Positions 1-50,571 of a stretch of DNA of 64,000 bases are shown here, piece by piece. Under the pieces are notes generated by a model. That model did no database searches and was not told the DNA's origin. It was given only the letters and a program-made list of their open reading frames with translations. Both the position numbers and the translations under genes were made by a program. Location: positions 372,001-436,000 of the forward strand of contig CDRNVI010000003.1 of assembly GCA_977017575.1 (NCBI GenBank). Reading direction: 5' to 3'. The stretch's first letter is position 1. Each line of letters begins with the position of its first letter. The DNA comes from Paramoeba atlantica (lineage: Eukaryota; Protista; Discosea).

Positions 1-1937
1 ACCTTCCACGGCAGCTCCCTCATCGGAATCTCCCCCACCGGGTCAAACGACCCATTCCCCGGCATCGGGTACCGCCCCGTGTGCCCGGGTCGCCGAATCC
101 GGTGCCTCCCCGTCATCCCCCACCCATACCCCCCGGCGTGATCCCCCAGGACCACACTCAACGCGGGGGCCGCGATCCGTTCCAGGCAGGCCTCCCGAAA
201 CCCCCGGACCGTCGCCACCTCCCCGGTGACCATCAGCAGGAACCCCTCCAGGGTCCTTGCCGCACTGCCCCCTTGCAGGGCCGCATTCCACATGGCCAGC
301 AACACACCCGAGTTAGCCCCAGCCACCCCGGGAAGGTGATGAACCAGTGGCCCGTAGTGGGTGTCCCGAAGCTGGAGAGCCACGGGTCGTTGCTTCCCGC
401 GGACCACAACCCGTTCGTGTCGGGTGCGGTAGGGGAGGGAGGTTCCGTTGTGGAGGTAGTGGGACTGGGGGCGACTCGGGTCGGGGGTGATGACGTAGAG
501 GTCGCAGAGGTCGGTCATGGCCAGGGTGATGCCCCAGGCGAGGGTGGTGGAGGCCCCGACGGTGATCCCGGGGAGTCCCGGGGGGGAGGCCCCGAGGAAG
601 GTTTGGTTGGTGTCGGTGATGTGGAGGGCGAGGTAGTACCAGCTCCCGGGGAAGTACATCTCGAGGTGGGGGTCGCTGCCGAGGGTGGGGGTGGGGGCGG
701 TGGGGGAGCGGGTGACCCAGGCGTTGGAGCCGCCGTGGGGGGTGAAGGCGCCGGACCACCAGGATGCGCGGGGGGGAGGGAGAGGGGAAGGGTTGGGGGA
801 GGCAGGGGCGTCCGGCTTTAAGGTATTGTGGGAAGAAGGATCGGTGCCGAGTTGAAACCAGCTCAAGGTCATGTCTTCAATATAAGAACGGAAGGGTACG
901 AAATCAAAGAATTCCCAGCTTGAGTCGGATGGTTTTGGAGCAGGGTGTTTGTCCTCAGAATCATGAGATGTGCTGTGTGGGGATAAATTCAATCCGTCAG
1001 GTGCCGCAGACGCATCAAGCGGAGGCACAGGAGATATTGAAGGAATTTCTTCCGTGTGTGGCGTTTCGATTTGAAACGGCACTGTGCGTTGACGCCATTC
1101 GCCCAACATTTCGTCGTAAACAGCTTTTTCGCGTTGAAAGCTATGATCCTCCTCCATAGCTCTAGTGTGTCGACTTTTAGAAACGTGTGGAGTGCAGTAG
1201 GGACCCGCTAAATCCTCTTCGGTAACTGTTGTGGTAAACGGCTTGCCCTCAAAATCACGAAGATAACGGTGAAACGGGTAAAGTTGCTCAACTTTGTCGT
1301 AATCGGTTCCACGAGAGCTATTTGAAAATAAGGTAGACCAGCGATCGATTTCATTCTGACAGTTGCTAGATAGTTCTGACTGAATTTGTACCAAAGACAG
1401 ACACACATCATGCGCCGTCCACGGTTCCACCTTAGCCACGTTTTTAAAAGGTCCATAGTATAGTAACATATCGGGGGGAGGCTTCGGATGCCGGCTTCGG
1501 TATAGATTTACCCCCGCTGCGTAGGATTCGATACAAGACCGATGCTGTGGAGAAATCCCTTCACACATTGCCCGGGCGACAGCGTCAAAATTCAGCGTAC
1601 GGACCCGAATATCATTTTCCAAGCCGGCATTACCTAATATTTCGCTCAGGCGTCCTTGCGAAGCGGCGCGACTTAGAACGAGTTGAGAGAAACGCTCCTG
1701 GGCATGGATAAATCCTTGTCCAAAAAAGGCGTCACGATGTGATTTTGCTTGCAGCTTCGGTGTACCATCCTCTCCCCACTCAATTCGGATCGTCCCATCC
1801 AATCCCTCAACGTTCCCATGACTTCTCTGATAATTTGCGGAACTTTGAGAAACGTATATGAGAACGAAAGTCAGAATACCGCCTGATACGAGAGCTACAA
1901 TAAGTAGTACGAATATGGGAATGTACAGACCTCTCAT
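1..1937 (-). CDS. Penicillin acylase / peptidase S45 family Ntn-hydrolase, 3'-partial (runs off window start)
   Basis: Hand-translated, stop-free frame from ATG at 1937 (MRGLYIPIFVLLIVALVSGGILTFVLI, signal/anchor). Alpha-chain motifs DAFFGQGFIHAQER, SYAAGVN, EPWTAHD; beta-chain N-terminal nucleophile GSNAW (Ser codon 726-728), then SDPHL, PGSWY, AWGIT, DLCDLY, THYGP. Absent from the ORF track because it has no stop inside the window. Confidence 0.9.
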   Translation of the reverse strand, partial: MRGLYIPIFVLLIVALVSGGILTFVLIYVSQSSANYQRSHGNVEGLDGTIRIEWGEDGTPKLQAKSHRDAFFGQGFIHAQERFSQLVLSRAASQGRLSEILGNAGLENDIRVRTLNFDAVARAMCEGISPQHRSCIESYAAGVNLYRSRHPKPPPDMLLYYGPFKNVAKVEPWTAHDVCLSLVQIQSELSSNCQNEIDRWSTLFSNSSRGTDYDKVEQLYPFHRYLRDFEGKPFTTTVTEEDLAGPYCTPHVSKSRHTRAMEEDHSFQREKAVYDEMLGEWRQRTVPFQIETPHTEEIPSISPVPPLDASAAPDGLNLSPHSTSHDSEDKHPAPKPSDSSWEFFDFVPFRSYIEDMTLSWFQLGTDPSSHNTLKPDAPASPNPSPLPPPRASWWSGAFTPHGGSNAWVTRSPTAPTPTLGSDPHLEMYFPGSWYYLALHITDTNQTFLGASPPGLPGITVGASTTLAWGITLAMTDLCDLYVITPDPSRPQSHYLHNGTSLPYRTRHERVVVRGKQRPVALQLRDTHYGPLVHHLPGVAGANSGVLLAMWNAALQGGSAARTLEGFLLMVTGEVATVRGFREACLERIAAPALSVVLGDHAGGYGWGMTGRHRIRRPGHTGRYPMPGNGSFDPVGEIPMRELPWK

Positions 1938-2503
1938 TTTTCTTCTGAAAGGGAGTTCAATGTCATAAAACAGCGTGAAACGGTACGCAAGGAGAGGAAG
2001 ACACACGCAAGTAAGGACGCTTAGACAAATGGTCGGAATGGTCACCGCACCACACCATTTTGTGCATTCACAGTAGCGAGACACAATGACGTGAGACCAG
2101 GGACTTAGCACAAGCAAGACTAAACCAAGAAGAAAACAAAATACAGTGAAAACAACCATGGTGTAATCCACGTGATAAAATAAATGCTTCCTCGCACCAC
2201 TTTGTTCCGCAGATTTGGCTTGCATTGGTTGAATTATTTGTACTCGGATCTGCTCTATCTGGTGCCCCTACTGGCTCGTGTATTTTGGAGTCAACGCATA
2301 CCAAACGTGTATCAAGTATGGAAATTTGACAGGCTAAAACCTAAAAAACATGATAGAAAATCACATGACAGAATATGAGCAATATAGAAGTATTTGTCTT
2401 CCTAGGTCCGTTTAACTGAATATCTACTATGTGTCACCGTTAATCCCGGTGAGAGAATTCGACTATACATATTACAATGTCTCCATTCGATAATCGCACA
2501 AAT

Positions 2504-4489
2504 CTAGAGAAGCCTTCTAAGCGTTCTCACCTTAGTCTTGGAGGATATATCGTCTGCGTCATCCCAGTAGCTGTCAATAAGCCGGGGCGACGGAGCTCTC
2601 GCGGGCGAGCTTAACGTGTCGCCGCCGGGAGACAGCGATCTGTGATTTCTAGACTCGCGACAAGGACGACACAGTTCCAGTTCCCCTAGGAAAGGGCATG
2701 TGCGTAGCTCCCCTTGAGGCAGCAGATAACTCCCACAACTCACCTCGGACCAGAACGGGGCATCACATGGACGTTCCACCTCCTTTGAGTGCACCTCCGT
2801 ACCATTCACAATCGTGATATGTCGAAGCACGGCACAGTTCGTGGAGCCGGTATACTGCATCTTCTTCGACGGAGAGAGCTGCGCAAACTCCTCTCCACCA
2901 GGTGACTTACCCCGTGTTGGGGTCCTCCCAAACGAAGTAAAATTCAACGGCAACTTATCCCCAGAGGAGCGATGCAACGCCCCTCGCTCCGAACGCGCAA
3001 TCAACTCGTGCAACACCGAGGTCATCTCCTCCACCACGACCCCACTTTGTTGTGGCCCCAAGAGAGACCCCGAATCCCCCCGAACGTTTAGTTTCCCTCC
3101 TCCTCCTTTTTCCTCCCTCCTTTGCGGGGACGCCATCCCCCCTCCTTCCCAACCTTGTGGCTTCGGCTGTGACAGACTCCTGGTCACCACAAGCGTGTTC
3201 CCCACATTGCTCTCCGCACTCCGTCGCGGGTGTAACGGAATCACCAAATCCCGTGACGCCCTTCCCCGTTTTCGTTGGTCATCCGGGGCCGACCGGCGTT
3301 CCGTCACGGTTCGTACCAACGTAATTTCCGGAACCCCGTGTGGGTCGGAGGGGGCCGTTGTTGTTGTTGTTGTTGTTCCTATGTTATGCATTGTTCTCTC
3401 CTCACCCCTTCTTCCCCCTTTCGTCCTCTCTTGAGGACTCAACAACTCTCCCCCGATCTCTCCCTCCTCCTCCTCCTCCTCCTCCCCCGTACTCACCACT
3501 AAGGAAGGGGAAGTACCCGAGGAAGTGATCAGAGAAGAAGAGGAAGAGGCCATAGAAGAAGTCATCATAGAAGTCATAGAAGAAGAAGTAGTAGCAGTAG
3601 TAGTAGTAATAGTAAAAGAAGAAGAAGAAGAAGGGGAGGGGGAGAGGGGGGGGAACGAGGCGGCCCCTCCCAGCCTCTCCGGGGGCAGGGTGTGGAGTCG
3701 GGTACTGGTGGCCACACACGGGGAGGTGTCGGGGCTGGAGAACGAGCTGGAGAGGTAGGGGGGGGAGGGGGAGAGCGTGGGGGGGGTAGCCGTGAGAGGA
3801 GTCGTAGTGGGAGTAGGGGAGGTGGAGGCCGAGAGACGACCGTGGGCGGTGTGCGGGGGGAGGTTAAGGGAGTGGGCGGGGTGGGGGGCGGGGAGACGGT
3901 CGGGGGTGGTGGTGGTGGTGGTGAGGGTAGGAAAGGCAGGGGTGATGGGGTCCGTGCGTCGACGAAAGGAGGCGGTGAGGTTACGCCAGTGGGAACCGGG
4001 GCGGGTGGGGTGGCTGGAGACGGCGGCGAGGGGAAGATTGGGGGAGGGGTCGGGGGAGGGGGTGGTGGGAGTTCGGGTACGGTTCGGGGGGAGGGTACGG
4101 CGTGCACGGATGACTTTTTCGTACGGAGGAGGCTTGAGTTTTCCTGTTCCTCGTTCAGTGGGGATATCGGTGGATCCCCACCTCTTCATGTCGACGAGGG
4201 TGAGAGAGGGCTCGGAGGGGGCGGTCTCCTCTACGCACCACGAGACGCTCCTTTTAACATCAAACTTTATAGGTTGAAAAGGCGCGCTCCCATCAGTTTC
4301 GGCATTCGATGACTTGAATGTGGGCGGTGAAGAGATGGATACATCGCCAATAGGAATGTCAGGAGATGTATGAGGTTCCTGAAATGTGTGTGTCTTTGCT
4401 GCGCTGTCAGCCTCTGAGTCTGTACAGCCCCACTGTACAAGAATCACTACACAAATCAGCATGTCAGAGAGGCGTCTTCTGCTGAGCAT
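2504..4489 (-). CDS. Hypothetical low-complexity protein (Pro/Thr/Ser-rich then Glu/Gly-rich), 661 aa
   Basis: Long ORF on the cluster strand; no recognisable domain; composition follows the GC/skew island it spans. Confidence 0.55.
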   Translation of the reverse strand: MLSRRRLSDMLICVVILVQWGCTDSEADSAAKTHTFQEPHTSPDIPIGDVSISSPPTFKSSNAETDGSAPFQPIKFDVKRSVSWCVEETAPSEPSLTLVDMKRWGSTDIPTERGTGKLKPPPYEKVIRARRTLPPNRTRTPTTPSPDPSPNLPLAAVSSHPTRPGSHWRNLTASFRRRTDPITPAFPTLTTTTTTPDRLPAPHPAHSLNLPPHTAHGRLSASTSPTPTTTPLTATPPTLSPSPPYLSSSFSSPDTSPCVATSTRLHTLPPERLGGAASFPPLSPSPSSSSSFTITTTTATTSSSMTSMMTSSMASSSSSLITSSGTSPSLVVSTGEEEEEEEGEIGGELLSPQERTKGGRRGEERTMHNIGTTTTTTTAPSDPHGVPEITLVRTVTERRSAPDDQRKRGRASRDLVIPLHPRRSAESNVGNTLVVTRSLSQPKPQGWEGGGMASPQRREEKGGGGKLNVRGDSGSLLGPQQSGVVVEEMTSVLHELIARSERGALHRSSGDKLPLNFTSFGRTPTRGKSPGGEEFAQLSPSKKMQYTGSTNCAVLRHITIVNGTEVHSKEVERPCDAPFWSEVSCGSYLLPQGELRTCPFLGELELCRPCRESRNHRSLSPGGDTLSSPARAPSPRLIDSYWDDADDISSKTKVRTLRRLL

Positions 4490-4858
4490 ATTAATTTAGA
4501 AGATGAGAAAAAGCACTAAGATAAGCCTATAGAATTTCTTTAGTTTTGTAATACTTACATCACATATAGTTTGACTGATAAGCTGACTTGAATCAACCAG
4601 AAAAACTATAATTTGGTTAAAAGACAGCCGAACGTGCACCCATTCAATCGTTTTAGCATGTCCTTATTGTGTTCATGCATTTCATGTATGTTAGGTCTAT
4701 CATTTCTTTTATTTTCCGTCGTAATAGGTTTCGCATATTCGTGCTTTTTTGACCAGAGAATAGTTTATCTTCAGTGTTTTACCAGTTTGCTCTTGTAACA
4801 CGTACTGCTACGCTACTAACACTACTAACTACTATGCTACTTACGTGTAAAATTAGTA

Positions 4859-7800
4859 TTACCTCGCAAGGCCCATCTCACCAAACAGATCCGATAACGG
4901 AATATATTGTCCGACAGCACTGTGCTGATAACGCTGCGCTAGGTGATGCAAATCGAAGTAGTAATCGTAGCCTTGCGGGGGCAATGTATCCGAAGCGGAT
5001 CTTCTAACGGCTGCATCAAACTGAGCTACAGAAAGGGGCTGGCCGACCAAGTCACCCTCGACAAATTCCCTACAGATAGTGTGCTGGTGCACAACCCAGA
5101 CTAGGGCTTTGGCAAGTCCAGTCGCGTCGTGAGAGATAGATGGCGGGTGTAAGCGCTCAAGCACGGTGTACAGCGTCCCCCATACACCTTGGTTTTCAAT
5201 AATTTTATCTTGAATGCGACCTTCCACATATGACAAAATATGCCGTGTGCTAAACAGTGCTTCAAAATAATCGAATTGCTGACGAAGCACATCTTCAGTG
5301 ATCCGTTCACTTTGCTCATCCTCCAGCATCTCATCCTGAGTTAAGTGTAAAGAGAAGTTTACGTGTTTGGTGTAGTAGTTACCCTGCGCTTTTCGAGCGC
5401 TTAGCGTTACACAGTTCATCACGTATTTAAAAGGAATTTCGAAGCTGCAACCTGGACAAGAATACCAAGGATGAGGCTGGATCAACGATTTCATATTTGT
5501 GAGGTCTGATTTCGGATCCAAAAGGCGTTCTACTAGGGCGAATGCTTTTTCTAAAAAATATTTGTGGGGCTGAATGGTGATGGTAGAGCGACATTTTATA
5601 CGGGGACATTGTACAGAAAGGTGTGATGCTTTTACAAACACCTCTTCAGGATTTGCATATCGCTGAGCCTGTACAAATTTCTCCTTTTCTTGATCGATAT
5701 GAATCGCAGAGGTCGAACTTGTATGCACCACTTTTTTAGGATCTAGTCCCATAGCTTCAGCAACCATTTCAAGATTACACCCATCAATGTGTTCTAGAAG
5801 TCGTGTGACAGGGGGGAATAACTGCGTGTTTACGTACCACAAAATATCTGGCCCGATACTGGAATTTTCCTTCATTTCAAATGGATGAAAACAACGTTGT
5901 GATAACTTTGTACCATTGCTTGGCACAGAATCCGTAGTTTCGGCTTCACACACGATGTACGGAATCAGATCCCCGACTTGAACTGACTCGTTACGCTCTT
6001 TCATACGAAGGGCCACACATACATGAGGATGATCTGCGACGTTTTGATACTCCTTTGGTTCTTTCGCGAGACTCTTGTAAACAACAAGGTCATCTAATGA
6101 TATCTCATGATTCTTTATCCTTTCTGCGAGTTTCAAAAGGTAGTCTGTAATCATTTCTGAAGTTTCTTTCTCTTGCGGATTTTCAGTAAGAATGGCTTCA
6201 AGAATAAAATTGCATGCATTTTTCGATAGAGCACACCACTCTCGACGAACAACATCTAGTCCCTTGATTTCTCGACGCATTTTGATACCCTTTTCCATAA
6301 AATCCACCACTTGCAGGGCAGCATACTTTTTCTTTCGAACAAGCAACATTGTGCGAAATATTCCATCAATATCGATTTCCAAAGTTTTGTAGCTCTTGTT
6401 AACCGCGTCTTTTATTTGCTGCGCAACTGCACGTACTGCGGCCAAATCTTGTGTAATACCTGTGCTAATCATGACGGAGTCGGTATCACCATATATCACT
6501 TGCAAATTCGGATTAATTCGTGGAACAAGTTCTACAGCTTGTGTCAGTGCATCTCTACCTTGCTGCGTAATTAATTCAGCCAAAAATTGTGCGTAGAATC
6601 TACTGTAACAAAAACCTAAACAACCGTACATGGAATTTGCAGTAAGTTTTAGAGCTTTTTGTCTAATTTCTAGCTGCCTTCGTTTGTCTTCCTGTTTCAC
6701 TGAATGTATTAGCTTTTTGACCTCTCTTCGACTATCTACCAACTCTTTGAGAACTTTGGGAAGTATATTTCGATGTTTACAAGGTCCTTGTAAACTCTTG
6801 CGGGCACAGTCTTCACAAATCAATTGATCAGGGGTGGGTAAACTCGCTATTGCCGTCTCACTATCTGCACTGCTCAAAGTATGGCGTACTGTCGTAAAAC
6901 AAATGTTAAACTCTTGGATGATGCTAGGATACAAGCTATTAAAGTCGAGCAAAAGAACATAGTCGGTGTACAGACCACGTCGGGGTTCCAATACCATACC
7001 ACCCATATATTTAGCCTTCCGTTTCCCGCCGATTTCACGTGCCTCGGTGTCCTCTTCATTGTCCTTAGCATCATTTTGTAGAAGTCTGAAGGATGGCTTG
7101 TCCGGCAACACAAATTTGTTAGCGTAAAACTTATGTAACAAAAGAAATTCAATTCGCTCGGCGCGTGCGCCATTCATCGTGCGCGACCATACGTTACCAG
7201 CTAGTGTAGTCATTCTCTTGGTGAGCGGTATGATATCCAAAAACAAGGCCAGTCCGGTTGCATAAAAAGCTTTCTGCATACAATTTGATACGACGCCAAA
7301 AACACCATCTTTAGTGCTCATTTGGCGAGATGGAGGCTGTTCCTCCTCTGAACGTGCGTTTTCTTCATCTCCGGCTAAGTTCGAGATACCAGTTCCCGAC
7401 AAATTTAGCTGTGCAGCCAAATCTCCCAAATTGTAGCTTGTAGCTTTGACGTATTCCTTAGCAATCAAATATGTATCGCAACAAAGACGTCCAGCTAGCA
7501 CTTCACGCTCAGCAGCAGAGGACTCTGCCATACCCCCAACCCCTGCTTGAAGCTTTGGAATTTCATGCAGGCGAAGCCGACCCAACCGAGACCAATTGGC
7601 AACCTTAAGGGCACTCAAGCGATGCAGTAAAACATCTAGATGAAAGGAATAAAAATTGTGACCAACAACGATGTCGGGATCTTCCATAAGCAAATATGAC
7701 AAGAAATTTTCGAGCAGTGTTTTTTCATTGTTCATGATCTCTGGACTCGGAAGTTTACGGCTCAAAAAAGGCTCTTCTAGCCCAAATGGCAAAAGCGAAT

Positions 7801-9367
7801 CTGGTTCCGGTTTACGTAACCCGGTCCAGAAAACCTTTTGTGTGTTCTCCAACTTACTTCCTTGCTCAGTGTCCATGGAACGCAACGTTAGAACACTAAT
7901 GCCAAGAATTTCGTTCGTTTTTCGCTTCGCATTCAATTCAGTAATAAGATTGATGCTACATAAGCACAATTTTGGAGACGGACGATGTACATCACTTGAC
8001 AATGTGTGAATTTGTTTCATGCCTTCTATTTCGAACTCTTCACTACAATACGTAACACGGCGACCGGGCAAGACAGATATGGGATTGTCAATCTGTAACC
8101 AGCAAGGACCCATTATGCGCCTCTTCAGTAGAAGATTTTCTAGACATGAACGATGTTGTCCGAATACCTCTGTAAAAGTTTTATGCTTACGATTTTCCAG
8201 AGGCAATGAAGGATCCATTGCTGAATACCTCATTTTTACCCAAGTTGTTTTCTCTGTTGGTACGTTAGGCTTTCCAAAAGCATACCACCGTTCAACTTTC
8301 TTAAAATACCGACGACGTATGCCAACTTTCTGGCAAAGCTCAGTAAGTTCTTGCACAACAAGTTCAAACGAGTTTTCCGTTCCATCCTCCAGAGTGATGC
8401 GAGGCAAAATAAACAATACGTGCTCTGGATTGCGGACGCGAAGACTACAACTCTTCCACTCAGTGTTTCCTCTGCACATTTTACCGAAGAAATAAACATC
8501 TTTCGACCGCGGTAATTCCCGCGCATCAATCCAATACATTTCAAGCGATTCTCCGGAGGGAAGTACAGGCCCTGGCTCGACTTTAATCTCCGACTTCATA
8601 GGAGTTGAAATATGAGAAGACGACAAAAATTCCATTTTAACCTCATGCGTTGCGGAAGTCGAAGCAGCTTGCGAGACGTCTGGCACAATTTTCCTGGCTG
8701 CAGTAAATCGCGAGGGACCTGCGGGAGGAGAGGAACATTGAAGAACTTCTTTTGTGTTGTCGTTGCGAAACTGCCCGGTTGGGGATAAGTCTTGTGGCAT
8801 GTCATGGGCGACGTGCTTTGCGGACTCTGTGATAGTTGTCTTTATCTCTTCATCAGTTTCTTTCCTCAAATTGTCTCTAGGCTGATCTTTTTGTATTCCC
8901 GTTCCGAACAAAATCGCATTTAAATCTGGCTCTTCATCGCTTTCGTTGTCGTCGAACAGTGTATTATCCGAGTGCAACAGAGTATGTATACGTTGATCTA
9001 GGTCCTCTATTGCACTAGGTTCAAAAGCGATTCCCTGCATGCCACCGGAGAGTTGGGAGGTATTTGCAGGGGCAGAAGTAAGACTTTGTAGAATACTAAC
9101 CTTCGGAGCCGGTTTCACAGTAGATTTCATTTCTTTCTTTTGCTCCTTTTTTTCGTTCGCACGTGTTTCCTTCTCTTTTTTGACACGAGCCGCTCGATCT
9201 GCCCTCTGTGCCTGTCTGCGAGATTTCTTCCTCTCAGGTTCGCGGTACATACCGCTCTGAGTTTCAGGGTCAAAGTTTGGGTCAAACAAATCATCGTCTT
9301 CCTGAATGTTATCCAAAGCACTTTTTACGTTTGACTCTAAATTATTTTCTTCATCAGTTCCGCTCAT
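4859..9367 (-). CDS. POLA1: DNA polymerase alpha catalytic subunit (family B)
   Basis: DFNSLYPS, KLTANSMYGCLG and YGDTDS polymerase motifs; inactive exo-like region (DPDIVVGHN); C-terminal Cys pairs. Likely start MSGTDEE at 9367; the ORF is open to 9457. Confidence 0.96.
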   Translation of the reverse strand: MSGTDEENNLESNVKSALDNIQEDDDLFDPNFDPETQSGMYREPERKKSRRQAQRADRAARVKKEKETRANEKKEQKKEMKSTVKPAPKVSILQSLTSAPANTSQLSGGMQGIAFEPSAIEDLDQRIHTLLHSDNTLFDDNESDEEPDLNAILFGTGIQKDQPRDNLRKETDEEIKTTITESAKHVAHDMPQDLSPTGQFRNDNTKEVLQCSSPPAGPSRFTAARKIVPDVSQAASTSATHEVKMEFLSSSHISTPMKSEIKVEPGPVLPSGESLEMYWIDARELPRSKDVYFFGKMCRGNTEWKSCSLRVRNPEHVLFILPRITLEDGTENSFELVVQELTELCQKVGIRRRYFKKVERWYAFGKPNVPTEKTTWVKMRYSAMDPSLPLENRKHKTFTEVFGQHRSCLENLLLKRRIMGPCWLQIDNPISVLPGRRVTYCSEEFEIEGMKQIHTLSSDVHRPSPKLCLCSINLITELNAKRKTNEILGISVLTLRSMDTEQGSKLENTQKVFWTGLRKPEPDSLLPFGLEEPFLSRKLPSPEIMNNEKTLLENFLSYLLMEDPDIVVGHNFYSFHLDVLLHRLSALKVANWSRLGRLRLHEIPKLQAGVGGMAESSAAEREVLAGRLCCDTYLIAKEYVKATSYNLGDLAAQLNLSGTGISNLAGDEENARSEEEQPPSRQMSTKDGVFGVVSNCMQKAFYATGLALFLDIIPLTKRMTTLAGNVWSRTMNGARAERIEFLLLHKFYANKFVLPDKPSFRLLQNDAKDNEEDTEAREIGGKRKAKYMGGMVLEPRRGLYTDYVLLLDFNSLYPSIIQEFNICFTTVRHTLSSADSETAIASLPTPDQLICEDCARKSLQGPCKHRNILPKVLKELVDSRREVKKLIHSVKQEDKRRQLEIRQKALKLTANSMYGCLGFCYSRFYAQFLAELITQQGRDALTQAVELVPRINPNLQVIYGDTDSVMISTGITQDLAAVRAVAQQIKDAVNKSYKTLEIDIDGIFRTMLLVRKKKYAALQVVDFMEKGIKMRREIKGLDVVRREWCALSKNACNFILEAILTENPQEKETSEMITDYLLKLAERIKNHEISLDDLVVYKSLAKEPKEYQNVADHPHVCVALRMKERNESVQVGDLIPYIVCEAETTDSVPSNGTKLSQRCFHPFEMKENSSIGPDILWYVNTQLFPPVTRLLEHIDGCNLEMVAEAMGLDPKKVVHTSSTSAIHIDQEKEKFVQAQRYANPEEVFVKASHLSVQCPRIKCRSTITIQPHKYFLEKAFALVERLLDPKSDLTNMKSLIQPHPWYSCPGCSFEIPFKYVMNCVTLSARKAQGNYYTKHVNFSLHLTQDEMLEDEQSERITEDVLRQQFDYFEALFSTRHILSYVEGRIQDKIIENQGVWGTLYTVLERLHPPSISHDATGLAKALVWVVHQHTICREFVEGDLVGQPLSVAQFDAAVRRSASDTLPPQGYDYYFDLHHLAQRYQHSAVGQYIPLSDLFGEMGLAR

Positions 9368-9529
9368 TTTCGTCTTTTTTGTAGAGGAAATAATATAATA
9401 ATAATCGTTAGTTCGACGAATGAAAAAATAGAGCCTTGCACTGAATTGGGCAGACAACGAAATTTAGAAAAACAAATTGCATTTGCATGTGATAAAGTAC
9501 CAAAATTCGACATTGAAGTCGATAATGCG

Positions 9530-10285
9530 CTAATCCAAAACAAAGGGAATAGAAACATCTTCTATACGCAAAGTTAAGGTTTTTAAGTCTATACATGCTT
9601 GATGTCTCCGCAATTGGTCAATGCCTAGAATGAAATTTATGTCACTAGTACTGATTTTTTCTACAATGGTTAGCGTAATTGGAAGCGATGTATCGTGCAG
9701 TTGGAGCAGTGCCATATGTACCCTGCCGATGATACATCCAGATCCTATACCGCGAGCTATTCCCTGAAAGCGTCTATCAAGAAGCCGAATTAACCCACAT
9801 TTCTCTGCGCACTCCTGACTCATTATCGACATCTGAGCTCCGGTATCAATTAAGGCCTTTAGGGGGACTTGATTGATCATTCCCTGCACGTAGAGCAAGG
9901 GCATAGGAACTAAAGACTCGGGATTATGTTCGTAACCAAGGGCAATGTTATCCGATAGATTTTGAGCTTGAATTTTTTCATAGGCTATACGCTGTGATTC
10001 GGCATTAAAGTCATCTTGAGGTACCGAGTTGGTCAATCTAGAAACTGTCGAATCTGTTCTTTGAACGTAGAGAGTATTTTTATTGCTTAAAGAGAGATCG
10101 CTGATATTAGCGTTATTTGCCTGCTGTTCTGTGTATGTTTGCTGGTTGGGAAAAGTAATCTTCTGTTGACCAGTTGGTATATCAAGTTTTCTTTCTATGG
10201 CTTCAAAAATTCCTCTTGTAGAAATATTGTCATCAACGTCGAGAGTACATCCCATCATATCCGAGGTGAACACTATGAGATGCAT
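9530..10285 (-). CDS. DDI1: DNA-damage-inducible protein 1 (UBL + retroviral-like aspartyl protease)
   Basis: N-terminal ubiquitin-like segment; MLYV-like LLYVQGMINQVPLKALIDTGAQMSIMS, FQGIARGIG, LGIDQLRRHQACIDL. Start taken at MHLIVF. Confidence 0.92.
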   Translation of the reverse strand: MHLIVFTSDMMGCTLDVDDNISTRGIFEAIERKLDIPTGQQKITFPNQQTYTEQQANNANISDLSLSNKNTLYVQRTDSTVSRLTNSVPQDDFNAESQRIAYEKIQAQNLSDNIALGYEHNPESLVPMPLLYVQGMINQVPLKALIDTGAQMSIMSQECAEKCGLIRLLDRRFQGIARGIGSGCIIGRVHMALLQLHDTSLPITLTIVEKISTSDINFILGIDQLRRHQACIDLKTLTLRIEDVSIPFVLD

Positions 10286-12003
10286 CAAAATATACAGTGG
10301 AATAAGAAAAATACATAAGACAGTTTCGCGAAGCATATAATTTATAAGATCACAAGATAGATTCTGTAACTACTCCTCGCTTAATTTAAACGACGAACCA
10401 GTATGAAACGAAGCTTCACAAAGGAAAGCGTATTATTTCAAGGCGAGAAAAACTGATAAAAATAAAGACTTTAACAAAAGAAGCACAAAGAAGTTTAAGT
10501 GTCACATTACCAATTAAAAACCGATTTATACATTTGTATATTATCTTCATAGCTTCACAATTAGAGTATCAGACGTATTTTCGATCATCAATTAGACTGA
10601 AGTGAATAAGATTTCAAGGATTATTATGAATTGCATCAGATGGAACAAGAATGGAAACGACACTTACTCAACTTTATAAGACATAAAAAAAGATACTCTT
10701 TTTTTGATACGATATTGAATGAAACGATATTGTTTACTCCTTAAAGCCTTCCGTAAATATAAAAGCGTATAAATATACGTGTATTACTAAATATAAGTAA
10801 ATATAAAATCATATGTATATATGTATGTGTATAAGATTTTTTTTTGCTTTTACAATGTAATATTCCGCTTACATCACGAAGCGTTCAGAGAACTGAAAGC
10901 GAAAAAAATCATTGTGTTGTCTATGATTCTCATGCAAATTAAGATTTGCGCCCCAACAAATGGGGTTCCTCAATAGGTGGGAGACATTCTTAATCATTTC
11001 GTGAAGGAAACAACAGATCAACAGAGAAATCTTGAAACTCCGCCACAATTTCACGACTTTCAAATTTTTTTTGCTTACGAATATTATTACAATTCCGTAA
11101 TAAGTTTGTTTAAGACGCATGGCCGCACCATGGGGGCAAAGGGGTTTAAAGACAAGTGGTGTACAGTACAGCGCTATGGCACATTGGATGGATACGAGGT
11201 TTTGGTACACCTACAAAGTTAAGAACACTCGTAAAGTAAGTAGGTACACACTGCACGAGAAGTCTATTCTGCAGTTCCCACACATCACGTGTGTCGAAAG
11301 CAATGAATTTGTTTTGGAGCTCATGAATATTTTTGGTCTCGGGAACTTCTTGCATGAGAGAGCTAGGAGGTGTCGCACGCTGAGAGGTACGTAAAGTGGA
11401 TGTGGGCGCTAACTTGTCTCGCTTTCATTGAAGCCGCCCGCTCCACCGTAAAATTTTCTAAGCATGCGGAGAAATATAAATTAGGTCGGAGATGAAAAGA
11501 TTAAACTGATGTACACACAAGGAACTCTCTTAAATCTATAGATCATTTCTCAAGATGAAACTACTGCTGACTTCAATTTCGAATGCTCCCAAATTCACAA
11601 ATAAGATCAAAAAGTGCCAACTTTCGTACTTTGTACGAATAGTACAGTGCATGATATGGTACTGTCGTACTAGGGAGATTTACATGCATGTAAATAAGGA
11701 ATTAAGGGCAAGTTTGTAGTAAAAACACTTCGTTTTTTATTTATCAAAGAAATGGATCTCATTATTAAAGGGAATTCTCCGCTTCACGACACAATTCAAG
11801 AGCAGAACTCTCCATTTGTAGACCCACGCTGTGTCATCATGACCAGTAATAGTACCTTCAAATACAAACTTCTATAAAAACATCATGGCGAATACTGTAT
11901 TTCCTAAAACAACTTTTAAATCTGCTATGATTAGTCATATATTTCTGCTCTTTGAGAATTGATACTTTAGGCATCCACTTGGAGGAATCTATTAATGGAT
12001 AAA

Positions 12004-13854
12004 CTACGACAAAAAGTATGGTTTCAATTTGGAAACCATGTCGCTAGCCGAATTCTGCTTCTCACCGAACCACGATGCGGTAGATTCGCGACTAATCCTG
12101 GAAGATCGAGATGCTCGCATAGCTAGTTTTTCAACAAGCACCGAAGAACAGCTAGCAACCGAACTCAATGTCGATAGACCTTCAAGGATGCTTTGCGTCG
12201 CATCAACTTTATCCTTCTCCTGCACACTGAGAAAGTCGTCCCATATTTCTGCCACTACTTCTTTTAACGTTTCCTCAGCGCCTTCCACTGATCCGTTGTA
12301 CCGATAACAGTGTTTCATCGAAGCTGCGAGAAGATTGACCAGAAGGCTCAATTTACACTGGGTTAACTGACGACCAAGACGAAGCCAACGAGAAACAAAT
12401 CGGGGAGCGTCCACCATTGCCTCCTCGCTAATAGCAATGGAAAGCGCTGTACTTAACGCATCGTTTAAATCCATGATGTCCCATGAGGAATTAAAGAGGA
12501 AATTACCCACCGTATCCTCTCGTTTTCCAAGTAGACAAAAGTCATACATCACAGTAAGTAACGTGTTTCGCACGTCTGTTACGTTCAATGGATTGAGCTT
12601 CAGTGCGTCCGTCCGTGACTCACCTTCGAGTAGTCGAGGGGGCAATACTTTTCTAGCAACAGTGATTCTCCGAGGTCGAGAAGTAGATGGACTAGTTGTA
12701 GCTCGTGCCGCAATGTCAACCCTGCTAGAACTTCTTCGCATAGATGGAGGAAATCCGCTTGAGCGATTGGATCCTCCTCTTGTCGGAGTTTCTAACGTCG
12801 GAGTGGATGTCTTTCTAGAGTCTGTGTCTCCGTACGCGGAGAGAGAATCGCACGAATGTGCGGGACGCATCTCCACGTGCAGTTCATCTGCTTTTTGCAC
12901 CCGAGCTACCCATTTCGAATCTCGTGTCTCTAATACATCTTGAAGCATAAAATGAATACGTGGAGCATAGAAATCCAGTTGAATGAGTTCGCTAATAACT
13001 TCCATTGAGACACTCATTTGGTCTGGAAAATCAACCTCGAAGCGGCGTCCGACAATCTTCAAGAGTGTGCAGACCATTTCAAGCCATTTGACCTCCGGAA
13101 GATCTTCTTCGTACGTATTTAAGAGTCTGTCGGACACAAGTTTGATGGTATCGCGCGACAAAATACTTGCTAAATACAGTTCACCTATGAATTTCATGAT
13201 GGCATACTTTCGTCGTTTCCATTTGTCACTAGAAGTTACAGTTAACTCGTCTTCGGAAGGATTCTCTTTTGCCAGGGCGTCCATCATGTCTTCAAATTCA
13301 CGTTGTGTTTGATTAATAACTTGTCTTTTGAATAACAAAGCCTGTGACCCTCGGGCACCTTCAGGAGCTTGAAGAAAAATTTCCAAACAAAAATTGACAT
13401 AAATCTGCGAGTACATAGGCTCTTGCAACGCTTTCTCAAAGATTTGTTGTACGGTGATCATCATTTTGTTCTCGTCGTTATAGATCTGCTTCACATCAAG
13501 AGTACGAATAATATCATTGTAGTTGTTTGGCGCAAGTTTGTTTAGCATACTACGCATTTTTCGTTCGAATTCAGCGTTCGCTGACGTGTTTGGCTTCCGC
13601 CGAGAAGACCAAGCGTTGTGGCCGATCACAAGCGCGTTCGTACCAGTACGCATGGCATCGCGAGATAACACACTCGATCGCGCCTCCGCGCCTTCCCCCT
13701 CGTTCGTAGATACTCGTAGATGCTCGACATCGATCATGTCGGGTGGTGTTTCGCAATAAATTTTTCGGTAAGAACGTAGAGTAGCACAATCGTAAATGTA
13801 TGGGGCGATGCCGGCATTGGTAGTATCTTGGACGGAAAGCTCGCAATGACTCAT
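12004..13854 (-). CDS. EIF4G: eIF4G-family translation initiation factor (MIF4G domain)
   Basis: RSMLNKLAPNNY, IFEKALQEPMYSQIY, KFIGELY MIF4G HEAT motifs. Paralogue number not assignable. Confidence 0.85.
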   Translation of the reverse strand: MSHCELSVQDTTNAGIAPYIYDCATLRSYRKIYCETPPDMIDVEHLRVSTNEGEGAEARSSVLSRDAMRTGTNALVIGHNAWSSRRKPNTSANAEFERKMRSMLNKLAPNNYNDIIRTLDVKQIYNDENKMMITVQQIFEKALQEPMYSQIYVNFCLEIFLQAPEGARGSQALLFKRQVINQTQREFEDMMDALAKENPSEDELTVTSSDKWKRRKYAIMKFIGELYLASILSRDTIKLVSDRLLNTYEEDLPEVKWLEMVCTLLKIVGRRFEVDFPDQMSVSMEVISELIQLDFYAPRIHFMLQDVLETRDSKWVARVQKADELHVEMRPAHSCDSLSAYGDTDSRKTSTPTLETPTRGGSNRSSGFPPSMRRSSSRVDIAARATTSPSTSRPRRITVARKVLPPRLLEGESRTDALKLNPLNVTDVRNTLLTVMYDFCLLGKREDTVGNFLFNSSWDIMDLNDALSTALSIAISEEAMVDAPRFVSRWLRLGRQLTQCKLSLLVNLLAASMKHCYRYNGSVEGAEETLKEVVAEIWDDFLSVQEKDKVDATQSILEGLSTLSSVASCSSVLVEKLAMRASRSSRISRESTASWFGEKQNSASDMVSKLKPYFLS

Positions 13855-38432: not shown

Positions 38433-38733
38433 GCGCCGAAAACACAAAGAAACCCAATACTTTCCTAGAAAGAAAAGTATGACTATGAATTTATAGAGTG
38501 GCATGAGGTTTGATCAACGTACACGATTTTGAGGAAATTATTTTTCCTCATTGAAAAATGGATTAAAAAACTTCGTCCACAATTCGAAATACCTAGCCTG
38601 AAATATCCCTGTGTAGCAAATGGGAGAGTACTATAGCAGAATCGTAACATTAAAATTTTTAACAAAAAAAAGAAATCTATAGCAGAAATATTTACAAGCA
38701 CGTACAAGAAATGATAAAGTACAAGGAAATTTT

Positions 38734-39405: not shown

Positions 39406-40807
39406 AGAAAAAATATGAAGTATCAATGTCAATTTTTGACCCAGAGAATAGTTTTAAGCACAACGTTTAGGAACAGATTTCGCGACCGTTCTATTTGCAG
39501 CCATCAGGGGAAAATGCTACTGTCCCCTCCCTTACACGCAACCGTTTGACCCTACGACTTATCGTAGCTACAATAATAATTATTGTAATAATATTTATTA
39601 ATAATAATTATTATTAAAAAAAGCAAATTATTAGTATTATCAATAGTTCAGTATGCATTTACGCGAGGGGCTGCGAGTGACACATGGGGAGCCCCTCGCA
39701 TGTAGACATATGGTCGGCGTCATTTGCAGCAGTATGATGGCAGCACCAGGGAAGACTGCGAGATCCAGAAAGCTCATTTTCGTTGCAACACATCATACAA
39801 ATACAGAGTTTGATATTTCCCGGCCCTCGATATCAGCACTCCACAAGGAGTTGTTGTTGGTACAGCACATTTACCTGCGTCAGGCGCAGGCTCCTACTTC
39901 CCGCGTAGGTTGAGGTGCATATAGTGATGCTCGAAGCATTAGCATCGACTCCATAAGGAGATCCCCATCAATGCTCCTTTTCGGCATGAAAATATTGTTT
40001 GATACAAAATTAAGGGGGAGAAATCTGAGTATAAAAGCCCAATAATAATTTATTAATAATCTATTAATAGTAATTGCGGTGGTTGTTTAACTACCGCTCT
40101 ACCCCCGATTATTGAAAAAAAGTGAAGAAAAACAGTGAAAATTTAAAGAGAAGCACAGCAATATAATAGAAGAAAAAAATATAAAAGTGGGCTCCGGTGG
40201 TCCAAAATTGAAAAAATTGAAAAAAATGGGGGGTCTAGGGGGGGGGTCCAGTAGGGGTCATGGTCGAGCAATTTTTTTTGAAAAAATTATTTTTCAAAAA
40301 AAAAGCGCAGAAGGGGTAGCCGGGATCTTGGCGCGTATTTTCCACCCCCCTACCCGGGGGTGACCCCCCCGCGTATCCGCAGGACGGGTCCGCCAAGTTC
40401 GGATTTTTTCGGAAAAGATTTTTTTTTGAAAAAACAATCGAGTTGGCGAAAAAAATGGCGAAAAAAATATTTTTTTCAAAATCCTTTGCCCTATTGTATT
40501 TTGATAGTTTAGGATCGATACTAGCCTTCCGCACCGTTGGTTTCGCAAGGTATCCCTTCTTGTAGCCGTGGTATGCTTCCCAAAATGACCCATTTTTGAC
40601 TAAAAAATGCGAAAAAGTAAGTTTCGGACCCAAAGGGGGCCTTTTTGTGTCGAAAGAGTGGTATGGTTGGAGTCGCATTCTCTACAGAATACGTTCCGTA
40701 CCCTTGAACGCATGCCTACGTGTGATTTCCCACACGCAAAAGTCGAATTTAGTGCTCGGAGAGCAAAAATACCCAAAAATCACCCCGTTTTCACCTAAAA
40801 ATCGGCT

Positions 40808-49043: not shown

Positions 49044-49302
49044 GAAAACAAAAGATAAGGAGAGATAAGCAAAAGCAAGAGTCTAAAATTTTACAAAACG
49101 ATGAGTAATTTTACGTTTAAAGGGTAACCTAGAGTGTAAGGCCAAGGGAAATGCACACTAAGTGTACTTTACCTTGCTACCCCTACTTTAGTGTGCCTTA
49201 CACTAACTACACCTTTGGTGAGGATTTATCCCTTTAGCAACACACTTTATCCCCCCTGTGCTCCCGGTACAAAACACTCCTGTTCAAAAAAGTCGTGTCC
49301 AT

Positions 49303-50571
49303 TCACGGGTTTACCTCACCCTCCCCCCCTCTCCCTATCTCCTCCATCACCCCCGCCATCAGCAGCGGAAACACCAATGTCGCCTCACACTCCACCACCG
49401 CCACCACCGTCCTCTCCCCCCCCACCCCCCCCACCCCCTCCCGCACCCCCCTCCCTGTGCTGCACCCCACCACCTCCCGTACCCCACACCCCACGTCCCG
49501 CACCGCGCTCACCATGTGGCTCCACGGCAGCCCCTCCCCCAGCACCACCACCCCCACCCCCATGGCGCCCCCCCCCGCCCGGAGCCCCGCCCGCAGCCCG
49601 GCCACGTCCCCCACCCCATCCAGCGCGAGCCCGGGGGACCGCGACGCGTGGAAGAAGACCATGTCCCCGAGGGAGCCGTCCGTGGGGGCGGGGCAGAACA
49701 CCGGGGCGCCGTGCCGGGCCGCGCCCTGGACGACGCTGTGGGGGTCGTAGGGGGGCGGGTGGGGGTCGCTCTCGTGTAGCCGTGGGTGCGTAGTTCCGGG
49801 GCTACCGGTTGGGGGGGGGGTACAGGGAGGGGGGTTGTTTAGGTTTTCGTGGCTACATGAGGGCGTGTTCGGGTTGTTCGTTTTAGGGCTACATGACGTG
49901 GTGTTGTTGGTTTCGTTTTTATTTCGATAGGTAGTATTAGGAGGACATGTGGTGTGATGAGGGTTCTTTTTATTTCTACATGTAGGATCATTGTTGTTGT
50001 TCTTTTCATTTCTACATGGACTTGTATTATTGTAGTTATTTTTATTCGTAAATTTAGGATTATTATTGTACCGTGCCGCTTGACTCAAATGCTCTACGAA
50101 TCGAGAAGGGGTAAGAGGGTTACCCTCGTGGACCAATTTGTCCAAAATCGGGTTAATAAAGTCCTCAAAAGCGGCATAGTGGGCATTAGGAATCAAGAGG
50201 TTTCCAATACGGTTAAGGCCACGGTTACGGAGCGTGTCCCCGGGGAGGGTGAAGGACCCAAGGAGAGTAGGACCGGCAAGAGATTTAATAAGATCCTCCT
50301 CGACGGCTCCGGCAGTGGTGACGATAGCATCAATGAGACCGGAGTGTGTGAGAGCAGCAAGGTGTTCACGAAGGCCGCAGGAGACCATGTTGGAGGTGAA
50401 ACCTAGGAGGATTTTGTATTCGCCGGGGTGGTCACGACGACGGCGGAGCATCTGGTGAAGGGTGCGGTGAGCGTGGTAGATTTCCGAGGCGGGGGGTCCG
50501 GCGTGCTGGTAGTCTTCCAGAAGTTCGGAGAGGGAGACAGTGTCGCGGGATAGCCAAGAGTTAAATCTCAT
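49303..50571 (-). CDS. Deoxyhypusine synthase paralogue, probably catalytically dead (prozyme-like), with Asn/Thr/Pro-rich insert
   Basis: FTSNMVSCGLRE, VTTAGAVEEDLIK, GLNRIGNL, PVFCPAPTDGSLGDM and EATLVFPLL are present; the GSDSGA..DEAVSWGK catalytic segment is absent. Start set at MRFNSW because the longer ORF overlaps the upstream gene. Confidence 0.8.
   Translation of the reverse strand: MRFNSWLSRDTVSLSELLEDYQHAGPPASEIYHAHRTLHQMLRRRRDHPGEYKILLGFTSNMVSCGLREHLAALTHSGLIDAIVTTAGAVEEDLIKSLAGPTLLGSFTLPGDTLRNRGLNRIGNLLIPNAHYAAFEDFINPILDKLVHEGNPLTPSRFVEHLSQAARYNNNPKFTNKNNYNNTSPCRNEKNNNNDPTCRNKKNPHHTTCPPNTTYRNKNETNNTTSCSPKTNNPNTPSCSHENLNNPPPCTPPPTGSPGTTHPRLHESDPHPPPYDPHSVVQGAARHGAPVFCPAPTDGSLGDMVFFHASRSPGLALDGVGDVAGLRAGLRAGGGAMGVGVVVLGEGLPWSHMVSAVRDVGCGVREVVGCSTGRGVREGVGGVGGERTVVAVVECEATLVFPLLMAGVMEEIGRGGEGEVNP

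Follow-up and report, generated by a model that had tools for sequence, protein, structure and literature searches.

Genes and GC islands in the window

The window, the whole stretch of 64,000 nucleotides analyzed here, has a mean GC content of 0.44 and was searched for islands by using 200-bp windows with a GC content of at least 0.58. Such windows were clustered at positions 1–900, 3000–4200, 29800–30900, 32900–33300, 38000–38400, and 49300–49900, with a further shoulder at 50300–50600. The whole window was also scanned for sign changes of (G−C) with 300-bp arms, which gave true changes at 412, 3499, 30111, 33175, and 49622, corresponding to five islands. The top strand of all five was C-rich to the left and G-rich to the right of a GC-saturated center, as an earlier note on this DNA had described. 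No true flip of the opposite polarity (G to C) was found in the window, every negative flip being an island edge that returned to zero. At 100-bp resolution, C peaked at 69% (49400–49499) and G at 65% (3850–3949). The earlier note had counted six islands with a flip; this held for five, while the candidate near 38300 was a weak GC3 bump (0.70–0.77) lacking a clear flip. The measured sample comprises five or six islands from one 64-kb window, each approximately 1 kb in size and set in genes that are otherwise AT-leaning. All six centers were located within minus-strand ORFs, again as claimed before. ORFs of at least 200 aa cover approximately 56% of the region, giving a rough p of ~0.03 for six out of six centers in coding sequence. 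The islands and their associated features are as follows.

1–900, flip at ~412: island 1, truncated at the left by the window start; in minus-strand ORF 3–2225, a penicillin-amidase-family acylase (conserved beta-chain part)
2950–4150, flip at ~3499: island 2; in minus-strand ORF 2504–4489, a low-complexity, unannotated ORF
29750–30650, flip at ~30111: island 3; in the minus-strand gene GSH1 (29002–31215), glutamate-cysteine ligase
32950–33500, flip at ~33175: island 5, weaker; in minus-strand gene 32890–33552, a small ubiquitin-like gene
38000–38400 (~38250–38300): possible sixth island, doubtful; a weak GC3 bump in the minus-strand gene RRP4 (37647–38504)
49250–49900, flip at ~49620–49650: island 4, the strongest; in minus-strand ORF 49303–50838, a deoxyhypusine synthase (DHS) paralogue
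49849–50047, minus strand: degenerate ~36-nt repeats in the DHS insert, coding for an Asn/Lys/Cys-rich peptide
50180–50660: shoulder in skew only, adjoining island 4 on its right; top strand G/A-rich at silent sites, moderate GC3

Island 1 had a GC content of 0.64–0.75 and a skew running from −0.32 in its C-rich left arm to +0.52 in its G-rich right arm (top strand); its GC3 was 0.83–1.00, with coding-strand four-fold sites that were C-only upstream and G-rich downstream. The acylase ORF matched Pfam PF01804 (E = 4e-82) continuously across this island. Island 2 changes the sign of its skew in a core of low complexity, (CCT)n/(GAA)n, with a skew of −0.48/−0.80 on the left and +0.83 on the right and a GC content of up to 0.74; no Pfam family was found for its ORF. 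Within GSH1, island 3 extends over the invariant YMDCMAFGMGCCCLQ core as well as over a Pro-rich loop that is variable, and the invariant columns were retained. Its C3:G3 ratio was 19:1 upstream and 2:17 downstream, and its center (30090–30180) exhibited a GC3 of 1.00 with G and C balanced. The weaker island 5 gave a flip score of 0.25 and a GC3 of 0.70–0.87, its top-strand four-fold sites counting C16:G4 to the left of the flip and C1:G23 to its right. For the bump in RRP4, a GC content of 0.58–0.62 and a skew near 0 were obtained, with four-fold sites of C13:G10, then C13:G18, and then C4:G9.

Island 4 reached a GC content of 0.84 and a GC3 of 0.90–1.00, with a skew running from −0.79 to +0.62 and downstream coding-strand four-fold sites of G25–27:C0–7. 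Its left arm covers the C-terminal domain of DHS, which is heavily recoded, and its right arm corresponds to a lineage-specific Pro-rich insertion. Alignment of this paralogue with solved DHS structures revealed an insert of ~110 aa and a Trp replacing the catalytic Lys. Beyond the stop codon of DHS, the C-skew of the island persists in non-coding DNA for approximately 150 bp. The ~36-nt repeats of the insert, on which Tandem Repeats Finder made no call, form a natural gradient: counted from far to near the center, top-strand G was 5, 6, 13, 16, and 14, and C was 4, 5, 2, 5, and 5, so that G climbs near the center with C flat, and GC content rises from 0.23 to 0.53. The adjacent shoulder exhibited a GC content of 0.58–0.63, a skew of +0.3 to +0.46, and a GC3 of 0.53–0.72, with 0–3 G and 10–14 C at coding-strand four-fold sites per 40 codons.

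The reading frames remain open across the islands, where they specify residues conserved in three enzyme families (acylase, GSH1, and DHS). In the upstream arm, Pro and Thr amounted to 15.4% and 11.8%, compared with 4.3% and 5.7% in background genes, and in the downstream arm Gly and Val amounted to 11.7% and 10.3%, compared with 4.7% and 6.4%. The reshaping of proteins previously proposed was hence observed for these residues, while the accompanying Asn-richness came from the single repeat of the DHS insert. The arms also contain lineage-specific low-complexity insertions and degenerate repeats. Canonical G4 motifs of the window fell into the islands in 17 of 18 cases with perfect strand polarity, the top-strand ones lying to the right of the center and the bottom-strand ones to the left. 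The CpG observed/expected ratio was ~1 genome-wide.

Silent sites and strand specificity

The GC3 of the islands was 0.9–1.0, compared with ~0.38 in background genes. Coding-strand four-fold sites were nearly all C upstream of the center and nearly all G downstream, A and T being nearly gone from them in the island cores, and the GC-skew flip was larger at silent sites than elsewhere. Restriction to four-fold sites had been set beforehand as a test that could refute the pattern, and the flip persisted. Codon bias and gene orientation are, as had been argued, inadequate explanations, and so is protein composition; the pattern is strongest at these sites. The islands represent a DNA-level drive and not protein selection, because GC3 is 0.9–1.0, a single base fills nearly all four-fold sites of an arm, and GSH1 and the acylase have kept their conserved residues. 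The former wording of C/A-rich and G/T-rich sides was not borne out, as A and T at four-fold sites just follow background codon usage; in island 4, the Asn/Lys-coding repeat makes up the T-rich tail on the right.

Along the profile, GC3 peaked and G and C were balanced at the center, the skew peaked 200–450 bp outward, and the four-fold-site skew was zero by approximately 900 bp (900–1200 bp); no sawtooth skew was found between the islands in 1-kb windows. Such a peaked profile is what conversion or resection tracts spreading from a break zone would give. The left arm (C 0.62/0.47) and the right arm (G 0.60/0.54) were equally strong, although all genes are transcribed in one direction, which fits an intrinsically two-fold symmetric event. 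Within the arms, A and T were reduced to 0.2–0.5× background, while the disfavored G/C base was still at 0.6–1.0×. Because A and T fall while that base is barely depleted, the drive is a W→S process like biased conversion, not an "anything to G" lesion bypass.

The strand that changes was identified from two-fold codons. In the upstream arm, NNY codons shifted to C (C/T = 96/39, p = 4e-13) and NNR codons did not (G/A = 19/28, p = 1); in the downstream arm, NNR codons shifted to G (G/A = 63/25, p = 1e-8) and NNY codons did not (C/T = 40/45, p = 0.14). Both types were shifted in the central 200 bp, where the bias was symmetric. The drive is therefore strand-polar, changing A/T to C solely on the inbound strand, whose 5'→3' direction points to the center, which equals A/T to G on the outgoing strand. 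Ordinary symmetric GC-biased conversion was ruled out by the response of the arms at one type of two-fold site only. The non-template strand of background genes showed no G-over-C excess despite sense transcription of the whole array.

Candidate processes

An 8-kb contig of run X1 spans island 3 with 0 differences to the window, and a 14-kb contig of run X2 (depth 55) spans it with 3 SNPs over 5.9 kb, where one of the two runs may be the source sample of the window assembly. A chimeric join at this island, for which the earlier note had allowed, was dismissed on the strength of these independent contigs. It is barely conceivable that the islands are some other artefact, such as polishing error or contaminant DNA: GC-extreme, homopolymer-rich DNA is prone to sequencing error, and short-read contigs of run X4 end within island 3, but that island was recovered in two runs, the frames stay open with the conserved residues of three enzyme families, and the flanks are continuous with genes that are syntenic in the relative L001. 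Synteny of L001 with the window holds, while its orthologous GSH1 region exhibited a GC3 of 0.30–0.57 and no comparable skew pattern. As island 3 is absent from this orthologous site, island positions are lineage-specific. In the sole RNA run (X5), contigs were confined to 31416–32661 and 33806–34205, with none over island 3 or island 5; such contigs show presence, not absence. Silent-site strength, the reach past the DHS stop codon, and the lack of an assembly join together indicate that a point-centered, two-fold symmetric, strand-asymmetric process at the DNA level, as formerly suggested, is the right class of explanation. Three members of this class had been put forward, namely replication origins, bidirectional R-loop initiation sites, and recombination hotspots with GC-biased conversion. 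The last was the best of the three, though plain gBGC is insufficient for a W→S drive on one strand.

In bacteria and in human skew domains, origins are classically marked by a left-to-right jump from C to G skew. The islands carry this jump together with two-fold symmetry and flanking G4 clusters, and bidirectional forks could give G-rich outgoing strands through leading/lagging mutation asymmetry or error-prone synthesis near the origin. This origin reading nevertheless fits poorly and is improbable: the skew vanishes within ~900 bp with no sawtooth between islands, while fork polarity should last for kilobases; nearly mono-base silent sites represent an amplitude far above known replicative skews; and GC saturation is unaccounted for by replicative asymmetry. 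In addition, more than 85% of mapped Trypanosoma brucei origins are intergenic (PMC13179062), whereas the island centers are all in ORFs, and the G4 strand polarity of the islands is the reverse of that at those origins (PMC13179062). Even less credit can be given to directly selected structural or regulatory elements in DNA or RNA, for example paired G4/i-motif modules, platforms for protein binding, or hairpins that the C-rich and G-rich halves would form in the mRNA. The concentrated, strand-ordered G4 motifs and the recurring architecture would suit them, but hundreds of single silent sites per island would need selection, the orthologous GSH1 site in L001 has no island, and the islands harm protein sequence, as in the recoded C-terminal domain of DHS. 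Furthermore, neither a common center motif nor a true inverted repeat was found at the islands, and the mRNA of island 4 folded no better than its shuffles (z = +1.3), which argues against a sequence-specific element.

A stronger competitor, still unlikely on balance, is intragenic divergent initiation with R-loops, in which the displaced outgoing strand would be exposed and its lost bases bypassed with C (the Rev1-type "C rule"), leading to a gain of G; a runaway could follow, as G-richness favors R-loops, G4s, and initiation. Here the proposed polarity fits, as transcripts diverging from the center would have the G-rich strands as their coding strands. Initiation in the start regions of T. 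brucei is driven directionally by G/T-rich elements located on the coding strand (PMC5579346), and human CpG-island promoters show co-oriented GC skew over ~1 kb (PMC3787257). If transcripts diverge from the center, the islands likewise carry a G excess on both non-template strands over ~1 kb with a GC-rich center. The location and polarity of the 17 G4 motifs agree with this, long runs of G and C are known to keep nucleosomes out (PMC5579346), and a one-strand drive is natural under lesion bypass. However, the unequal arms and strong loss of C that this process predicts were unseen: equal arms in a one-way array would require antisense initiation that matches sense, and single-strand damage should hit C most, whereas depletion on the G-rich strand is least for C. 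Background genes also lack the G-over-C excess on the non-template strand that array-wide sense transcription should leave. Finally, kinetoplastid-type genomes have few initiation regions, located between gene arrays, unlike islands that occur approximately once per 10 kb inside coding sequence.

We therefore favor, tentatively and at somewhat less than even odds, the reading that the islands are stable hotspots of DNA breakage or recombination at which heteroduplex repair is GC-biased and polar; R-loop sites and origins are weaker candidates. Each island would be the accumulated footprint of a recurrent DNA transaction that proceeds from a fixed point ~0.3–0.6 kb outward on both sides, a local repair or recombination bias with enough force to alter proteins. 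Once a central break has been resected 5'→3', the single-stranded DNA would be the top strand to the left and the bottom strand to the right. These 3' tails would pair with the homologue, forming a heteroduplex of the "inbound" strand of the broken chromatid opposite a donor-derived strand. Base-excision enzymes of the TDG/MBD4 and MUTYH kinds correct G·T and G·A mispairs to G:C. If such mispairs were corrected in this way and C-containing ones merely restored, the net conversions would be solely A/T to C on the tail strand, giving top-strand C on the left and G on the right, and scattered break positions would add both G and C at the center. Long repetition would saturate silent sites, and protein segments under weak constraint would shift to Pro/Thr upstream and to Gly/Val downstream, while purifying selection would keep conserved residues. 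Because all six centers fall in coding sequence, the extra assumption is needed that selection has purged islands from the regions of splice and poly(A) signals. The repair rule is inferred from general knowledge of mismatch glycosylases, and no report of it as a source of genomic skew was found; error-prone resynthesis that misinserts G would account for the data equally well.

The strand-asymmetric mutations documented in human meiotic hotspots deprive the 3'-tail strand of C and A (PMC7615360). This loss alone would give the opposite skew, and conversion bias must therefore outweigh single-strand damage under the break-hotspot reading. Break-prone hotspots also carry an excess of indels and repeats (PMC7615360), which the low-complexity insertions and degenerate repeats of the arms resemble. 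In gerbil Pdx1, local GC-biased substitution overrides a conserved gene, which is a precedent (PMC6573468). By extension, and rather doubtfully, break or recombination hotspots with heteroduplex repair both GC-biased and strand-polar may number in the thousands in this genome, long-lived and self-reinforcing. If so, each hotspot would write a permanent C-then-G signature into its host gene, and the genome sequence alone would record, at base resolution, the history of where initiation took place and of which strand formed the 3' tail. The polar rule might also add to GC skew at stable hotspots or CpG islands of other eukaryotes.

Comparison with known systems

No published description of such strand-polar GC islands was found. 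The T. brucei origins that stranded SNS-seq has located (eLife 2026, PMC13179062) share strand-specific G4s that flank a center with two-fold symmetry, but they are poly(dA)/poly(dT)-flanked and mostly intergenic with the opposite G4 polarity, whereas the island skew is short-range and saturating. Dispersed GT-rich Pol II promoters of this species carry directional, nucleosome-excluding G/T runs on the coding strand (Wedel et al. 2017, PMC5579346), and the island arms share their strand polarity for divergent transcription. Unlike the islands, these start regions are placed between the arrays of genes and are not reported to be coding sequence with saturated GC3, and their T component is no neutral-site feature in the islands. 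CpG-island promoters (Ginno et al. 2013, PMC3787257) are similar in being GC-rich over ~1 kb with a CpG-dense center and a G-rich non-template strand downstream of the start, so that a flip is expected at divergent promoters. In humans, however, they sit at the 5' ends of genes, and the genome is methylated and depleted of CpG, whereas CpG observed/expected is ~1 here and the present islands have a much larger amplitude inside the coding sequence of a one-way array.

Human meiotic break hotspots (Hinch et al. 2023, PMC7615360) exhibit a two-fold symmetric strand asymmetry over ~1–2 kb that is absent in the central ~100 bp, together with the indel/repeat excess. They differ in that the human 3'-tail strand loses C and A while the corresponding strand of the islands gains C, and in that the human signal is a weak mutational excess while the islands are saturated. 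With respect to gBGC, a local G+C excess at neutral sites was found in the islands, and a strand-symmetric W→S bias was absent from their arms. Classical gBGC acts W→S on both strands, in contrast to the one strand per arm and full C-to-G flip seen here, and no published description of a skew flip in gBGC tracts was found. In other respects, gBGC hotspots and the runaway GC regions of gerbils (Pdx1, ParaHox) resemble the islands, showing local extreme silent-site GC on a ~kilobase scale at lineage-specific positions, where amino-acid composition is dragged and conserved genes are overridden (PMC6573468).

GC islands within a one-way gene array

The GC content of the window is 44%. From position 1 to approximately 51 kb, intron-less minus-strand ORFs form a one-way array, which includes the following genes.

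3–2225, minus strand: penicillin-amidase-family acylase (Pfam PF01804, E = 4e-82), extending beyond the window edge
4859–9457, minus strand: DNA polymerase alpha
29002–31215, minus strand: glutamate-cysteine ligase GSH1
37647–38504, minus strand: RRP4
49303–50838, minus strand: paralogue of deoxyhypusine synthase (DHS)
Minus-strand array member: sugar transporter

The 200-bp windows with a GC fraction of at least 0.58 clustered at all six GC-rich places named in an earlier note, which are the strong islands 1–4 (1–900, 2950–4150, 29750–30650, and 49250–49900), the weaker island 5 (32950–33500), and a doubtful sixth site in RRP4 (approximately 38000–38400). A skew flip had been claimed for all six. 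When 300-bp arms were scanned for a sign change of G−C, true changes were detected only at 412, 3499, 30111, 33175, and 49622, each passing from C-rich on the left to G-rich on the right of the top strand (5/5), and the "negative" skew events were island edges only. The flip was hence confirmed at five sites, whereas at the site near 38300 GC3 was raised but no clear flip was seen. At 100-bp resolution, the GC content of island 4 reached 84%, with 69% C at 49400–49499 and 54% G at 49750–49849. All six centres are located in coding sequence, while ORFs of at least 200 aa occupy approximately 56% of the region (rough p ~0.03). The simplest reason for this placement, under any mechanism, is that intergenic islands would wreck splice and poly(A) signals and be purged by selection.

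A chimeric assembly join was excluded for island 3, which is crossed by an 8-kb contig of sequencing run X1 with no differences from the window and by a 14-kb contig of run X2 (depth 55) with three SNPs, one of these two contigs possibly being the window's own source. The X2 differences, only three over 5.9 kb, are 29121 C>G, 29716 A>G, and 29796 G>T; the latter two fall in the left flank of island 3, either on its edge or slightly beyond. Three differences are too few to test for a raised mutation rate. Contigs of other loci (X1, X2, and X4) align to a 30-nt G-rich segment at 30340–30372 and then diverge, so near-identical low-complexity G-runs are common to island arms elsewhere in the genome.

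Canonical G4 motifs are confined to the islands in 17 of 18 cases in the window, lying on the top strand in right arms (12/12) and on the bottom strand in left arms (5/5); the sole motif outside is at 40228–40257. No true inverted repeat was found in the islands, and a palindrome or foldback element was rejected because only compositional complementarity was present (71–83% over 17–41 nt). The island centres share no motif beyond C-runs. An mRNA hairpin pairing the C-rich with the G-rich half folded no better than shuffles (z = +1.3), and a CpG-methylation logic is contradicted by the CpG observed/expected ratio of approximately 1.00 across the whole window.

Strand polarity at silent sites

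The GC3 value was 0.33–0.46 in background genes and 0.83–1.00 within the islands (30-codon windows). Upstream of the centre, the coding strand has C at nearly all four-fold sites (20–28 of 23–30 sites in the acylase), with no G in the DHS shoulder; downstream, it has G at nearly all of them (25–27 of 27–34 sites in DHS, with C at 0–7). When the six sites were pooled, the top-strand four-fold fractions of C and G were 0.62 and 0.18 at −300 to −100, 0.33 and 0.41 at the centre, and 0.15 and 0.60 at +100 to +300, and parity was regained by 900–1200 bp from the centre. The flip thus persists at four-fold degenerate sites and is strongest there, so that the loss of the flip at these sites, which the earlier note had named as a refutation, did not occur; the C-skew also runs on for approximately 150 bp past the DHS stop codon. 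Together, these observations rule out a protein- or codon-driven composition. The description of the arms as C/A-rich and G/T-rich did not hold as a property of the process, since A and T at four-fold sites match background usage, with top-strand A slightly exceeding T on both sides of the centre. A single-strand deamination signature (G+T versus C+A) is likewise absent at neutral sites.

The T-richness in the right tail of island 4 corresponds to an Asn/Lys-coding degenerate repeat of approximately 36 nt. Its units, which were found by manual anchoring on ACATG and are useful only as a gradient, contain 5, 6, 13, 16, and 14 top-strand G toward the centre with C flat. A tandem-repeat origin of this island was rejected, as Tandem Repeats Finder made no call.

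The symmetry of the A/T-to-G/C drive was tested at two-fold codons.

Table. Counts at two-fold codons (NNY, C/T; NNR, G/A) in background genes and island segments.
Segment; NNY C/T; NNR G/A
Background genes; 533/849; 530/793
Upstream (C) arm; 96/39 (p=4e-13); 19/28 (p=1)
Downstream (G) arm; 40/45 (p=0.14); 63/25 (p=1e-8)
Central 200 bp; 51/10; 32/10

Each arm is driven on one strand only, namely the one whose 5'→3' direction points toward the centre (the inbound strand), where A/T is changed to C. The other G/C base remains at 0.6–1.0 times background in the arms, and A and T fall to 0.2–0.5 times. The process is therefore A/T-to-G/C and polar, not a change of any base to G, and the two-fold codon test rules out symmetric GC-biased gene conversion (gBGC) acting together with an independent G-versus-C bias.

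Encoded proteins and a syntenic relative

Upstream arms encode 15.4% Pro and 11.8% Thr, and downstream arms 11.7% Gly and 10.3% Val. Invariant GSH1 columns, among them the core YMDCMAFGMGCCCLQ together with dozens of others, are kept exactly where GC3 = 1.00, and the Pfam match of the acylase continues across island 1. The composition of the DNA drives the protein, not the reverse; weakly constrained segments are recoded and conserved residues survive. In DHS, an insert of approximately 110 aa separates residues that directly neighbour each other in the human enzyme, and Trp occupies the position of the catalytic Lys (human GGGVVKHH versus GEGLPWSH), so that, judged from its sequence, the protein resembles a non-catalytic paralogue. 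The regulatory (dead) subunit of T. brucei is a good match to its N-terminal half (6dft_B, E = 7.7e-42), and the catalytic subunit (6dft_A) matches the C-terminal part only, weakly (E = 2.4e-4).

Plus-strand ORFs lie exactly over the islands in antisense at 81–821, 3692–4312, 29515–30519, and 49191–49793. For these Gly/Arg- or Pro-rich ORFs of 200–334 aa, the best explanation is that stop codons are lacking where the DNA is GC-saturated, and they should stay unannotated as genes. The only other plus-strand ORF of at least 200 aa is located within 51501–54627, a stretch that has no island.

GSH1 is 42–45% identical to diplonemid and trypanosomatid proteins alike, and a search of 5.8 billion proteins gave a best match of 50% identity. 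The genes therefore look like those of a euglenozoan of kinetoplastid/diplonemid grade without a close sequenced relative. Substitution polarity is not inferable from homologues this distant. Exact-protein look-up gave no record for GSH1 or the ORF 2504–4489. Tandem minus-strand paralogues at 31489–32682 and 32890–33552 share the motif ITEYL..DFSDC..SLRARY and a ubiquitin-like C-terminus, with an island only in the shorter, downstream copy; at 35% identity over 179 aa, they are too old for polarising substitutions.

The best GSH1 match is on L001, a metagenome contig of a distant relative (ENA ERZ25072283), of which 1–18643 was compared with 4859–47191 of the window; it is syntenic, with the genes in the order sugar transporter, RRP4, GSH1, and a family-B DNA polymerase. 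The orthologous GSH1 region of L001 has a GC3 of 0.30–0.57 and lacks the island skew pattern, and the 18.6-kb contig contains mild C3-rich stretches at most. The spacing between GSH1 and the polymerase is approximately 5 kb in L001 versus 20 kb in the window, indicating extra genes or insertions gained or kept in the latter. A "half island" is located at 50180–50660, where silent sites of the N-terminal half of DHS are nearly all pyrimidine on the coding strand (G at 0–3 four-fold sites per 40 codons) with only moderate GC3; such C/T-only four-fold stretches also occur in L001, for example at 13595–13900.

Possible origin of the islands

A replication origin, divergent R-loop initiation, and a central break all have the right two-fold symmetry. 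Our leading reading, held tentatively, is a central double-strand break with biased repair. Resection would turn the inbound strands into 3' tails, an anatomy described around central breaks (PMC7615360), and would thereby give the heteroduplex a set polarity to the left and to the right of the break. Suppose that repair then turned G.T and G.A mispairs into G:C and restored those containing C, a rule that we infer; the tail strand would then undergo no net change other than A/T to C. This model accounts for the polarity, the counts at two-fold codons, and the near-background level of the other G/C base, as well as the balanced saturated centre, equal arms, ~0.5-kb scale, and indifference to coding. 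The recombination hotspot with GC-biased conversion proposed in the earlier note comes closest to it, but symmetric gBGC fails the two-fold codon test.

Divergent transcription initiation with putative R-loops, also proposed in the earlier note, appears unlikely. Bypass of abasic sites inserts C (the "C rule"), which would raise G on the displaced strand. The polarity also matches the coding-strand G/T-rich promoters of T. brucei (PMC5579346) and the skewed CpG-island promoters of human (PMC3787257). However, background genes have no skew despite constitutive sense transcription, the arms are equally strong within a one-way array, and C, which single-strand damage should remove before the other bases, is depleted least. 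The third candidate, a replication origin at each centre, is improbable. A left-to-right jump from C to G skew is the classical sign of an origin and is present here, but the skew vanishes within ~900 bp, its amplitude is saturating, and the GC enrichment is left unexplained. Moreover, the G4 polarity at T. brucei origins, of which >85% of those mapped are intergenic, is opposite to that of the islands (PMC13179062). Selected elements, an artefact, or some other cause take the share left by these three readings.

Full-text literature searches on kinetoplastids and bodonids turned up no prior description of such islands, and we could not find a report of the strand-polar signature. If the islands are initiation sites of recombination or repair, they would provide a sequence-only map of such sites, including strand polarity, for a lineage whose recombination, origins, and promoters are barely known. 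Biased repair could then be strand-polar besides GC-biased, which would affect how GC skew is interpreted in other eukaryotes, be it at promoters, at CpG islands, or at hotspots. The islands show the reach of a non-adaptive DNA-level force in rewriting proteins, its products here being Pro/Thr and Gly/Val tracts, a recoded DHS domain, and large in-frame insertions. They will mislead gene finders because of the spurious antisense ORFs in every island, and also codon-usage and selection analyses, phylogenies, and, in this genome, searches for new domains or "inteins". A precedent for local GC-biased substitution overriding conserved genes is found in gerbils (PMC6573468). A weak point of the break-and-repair reading is that the mutational asymmetry documented at human hotspots is opposite in sign to that of the islands (PMC7615360).
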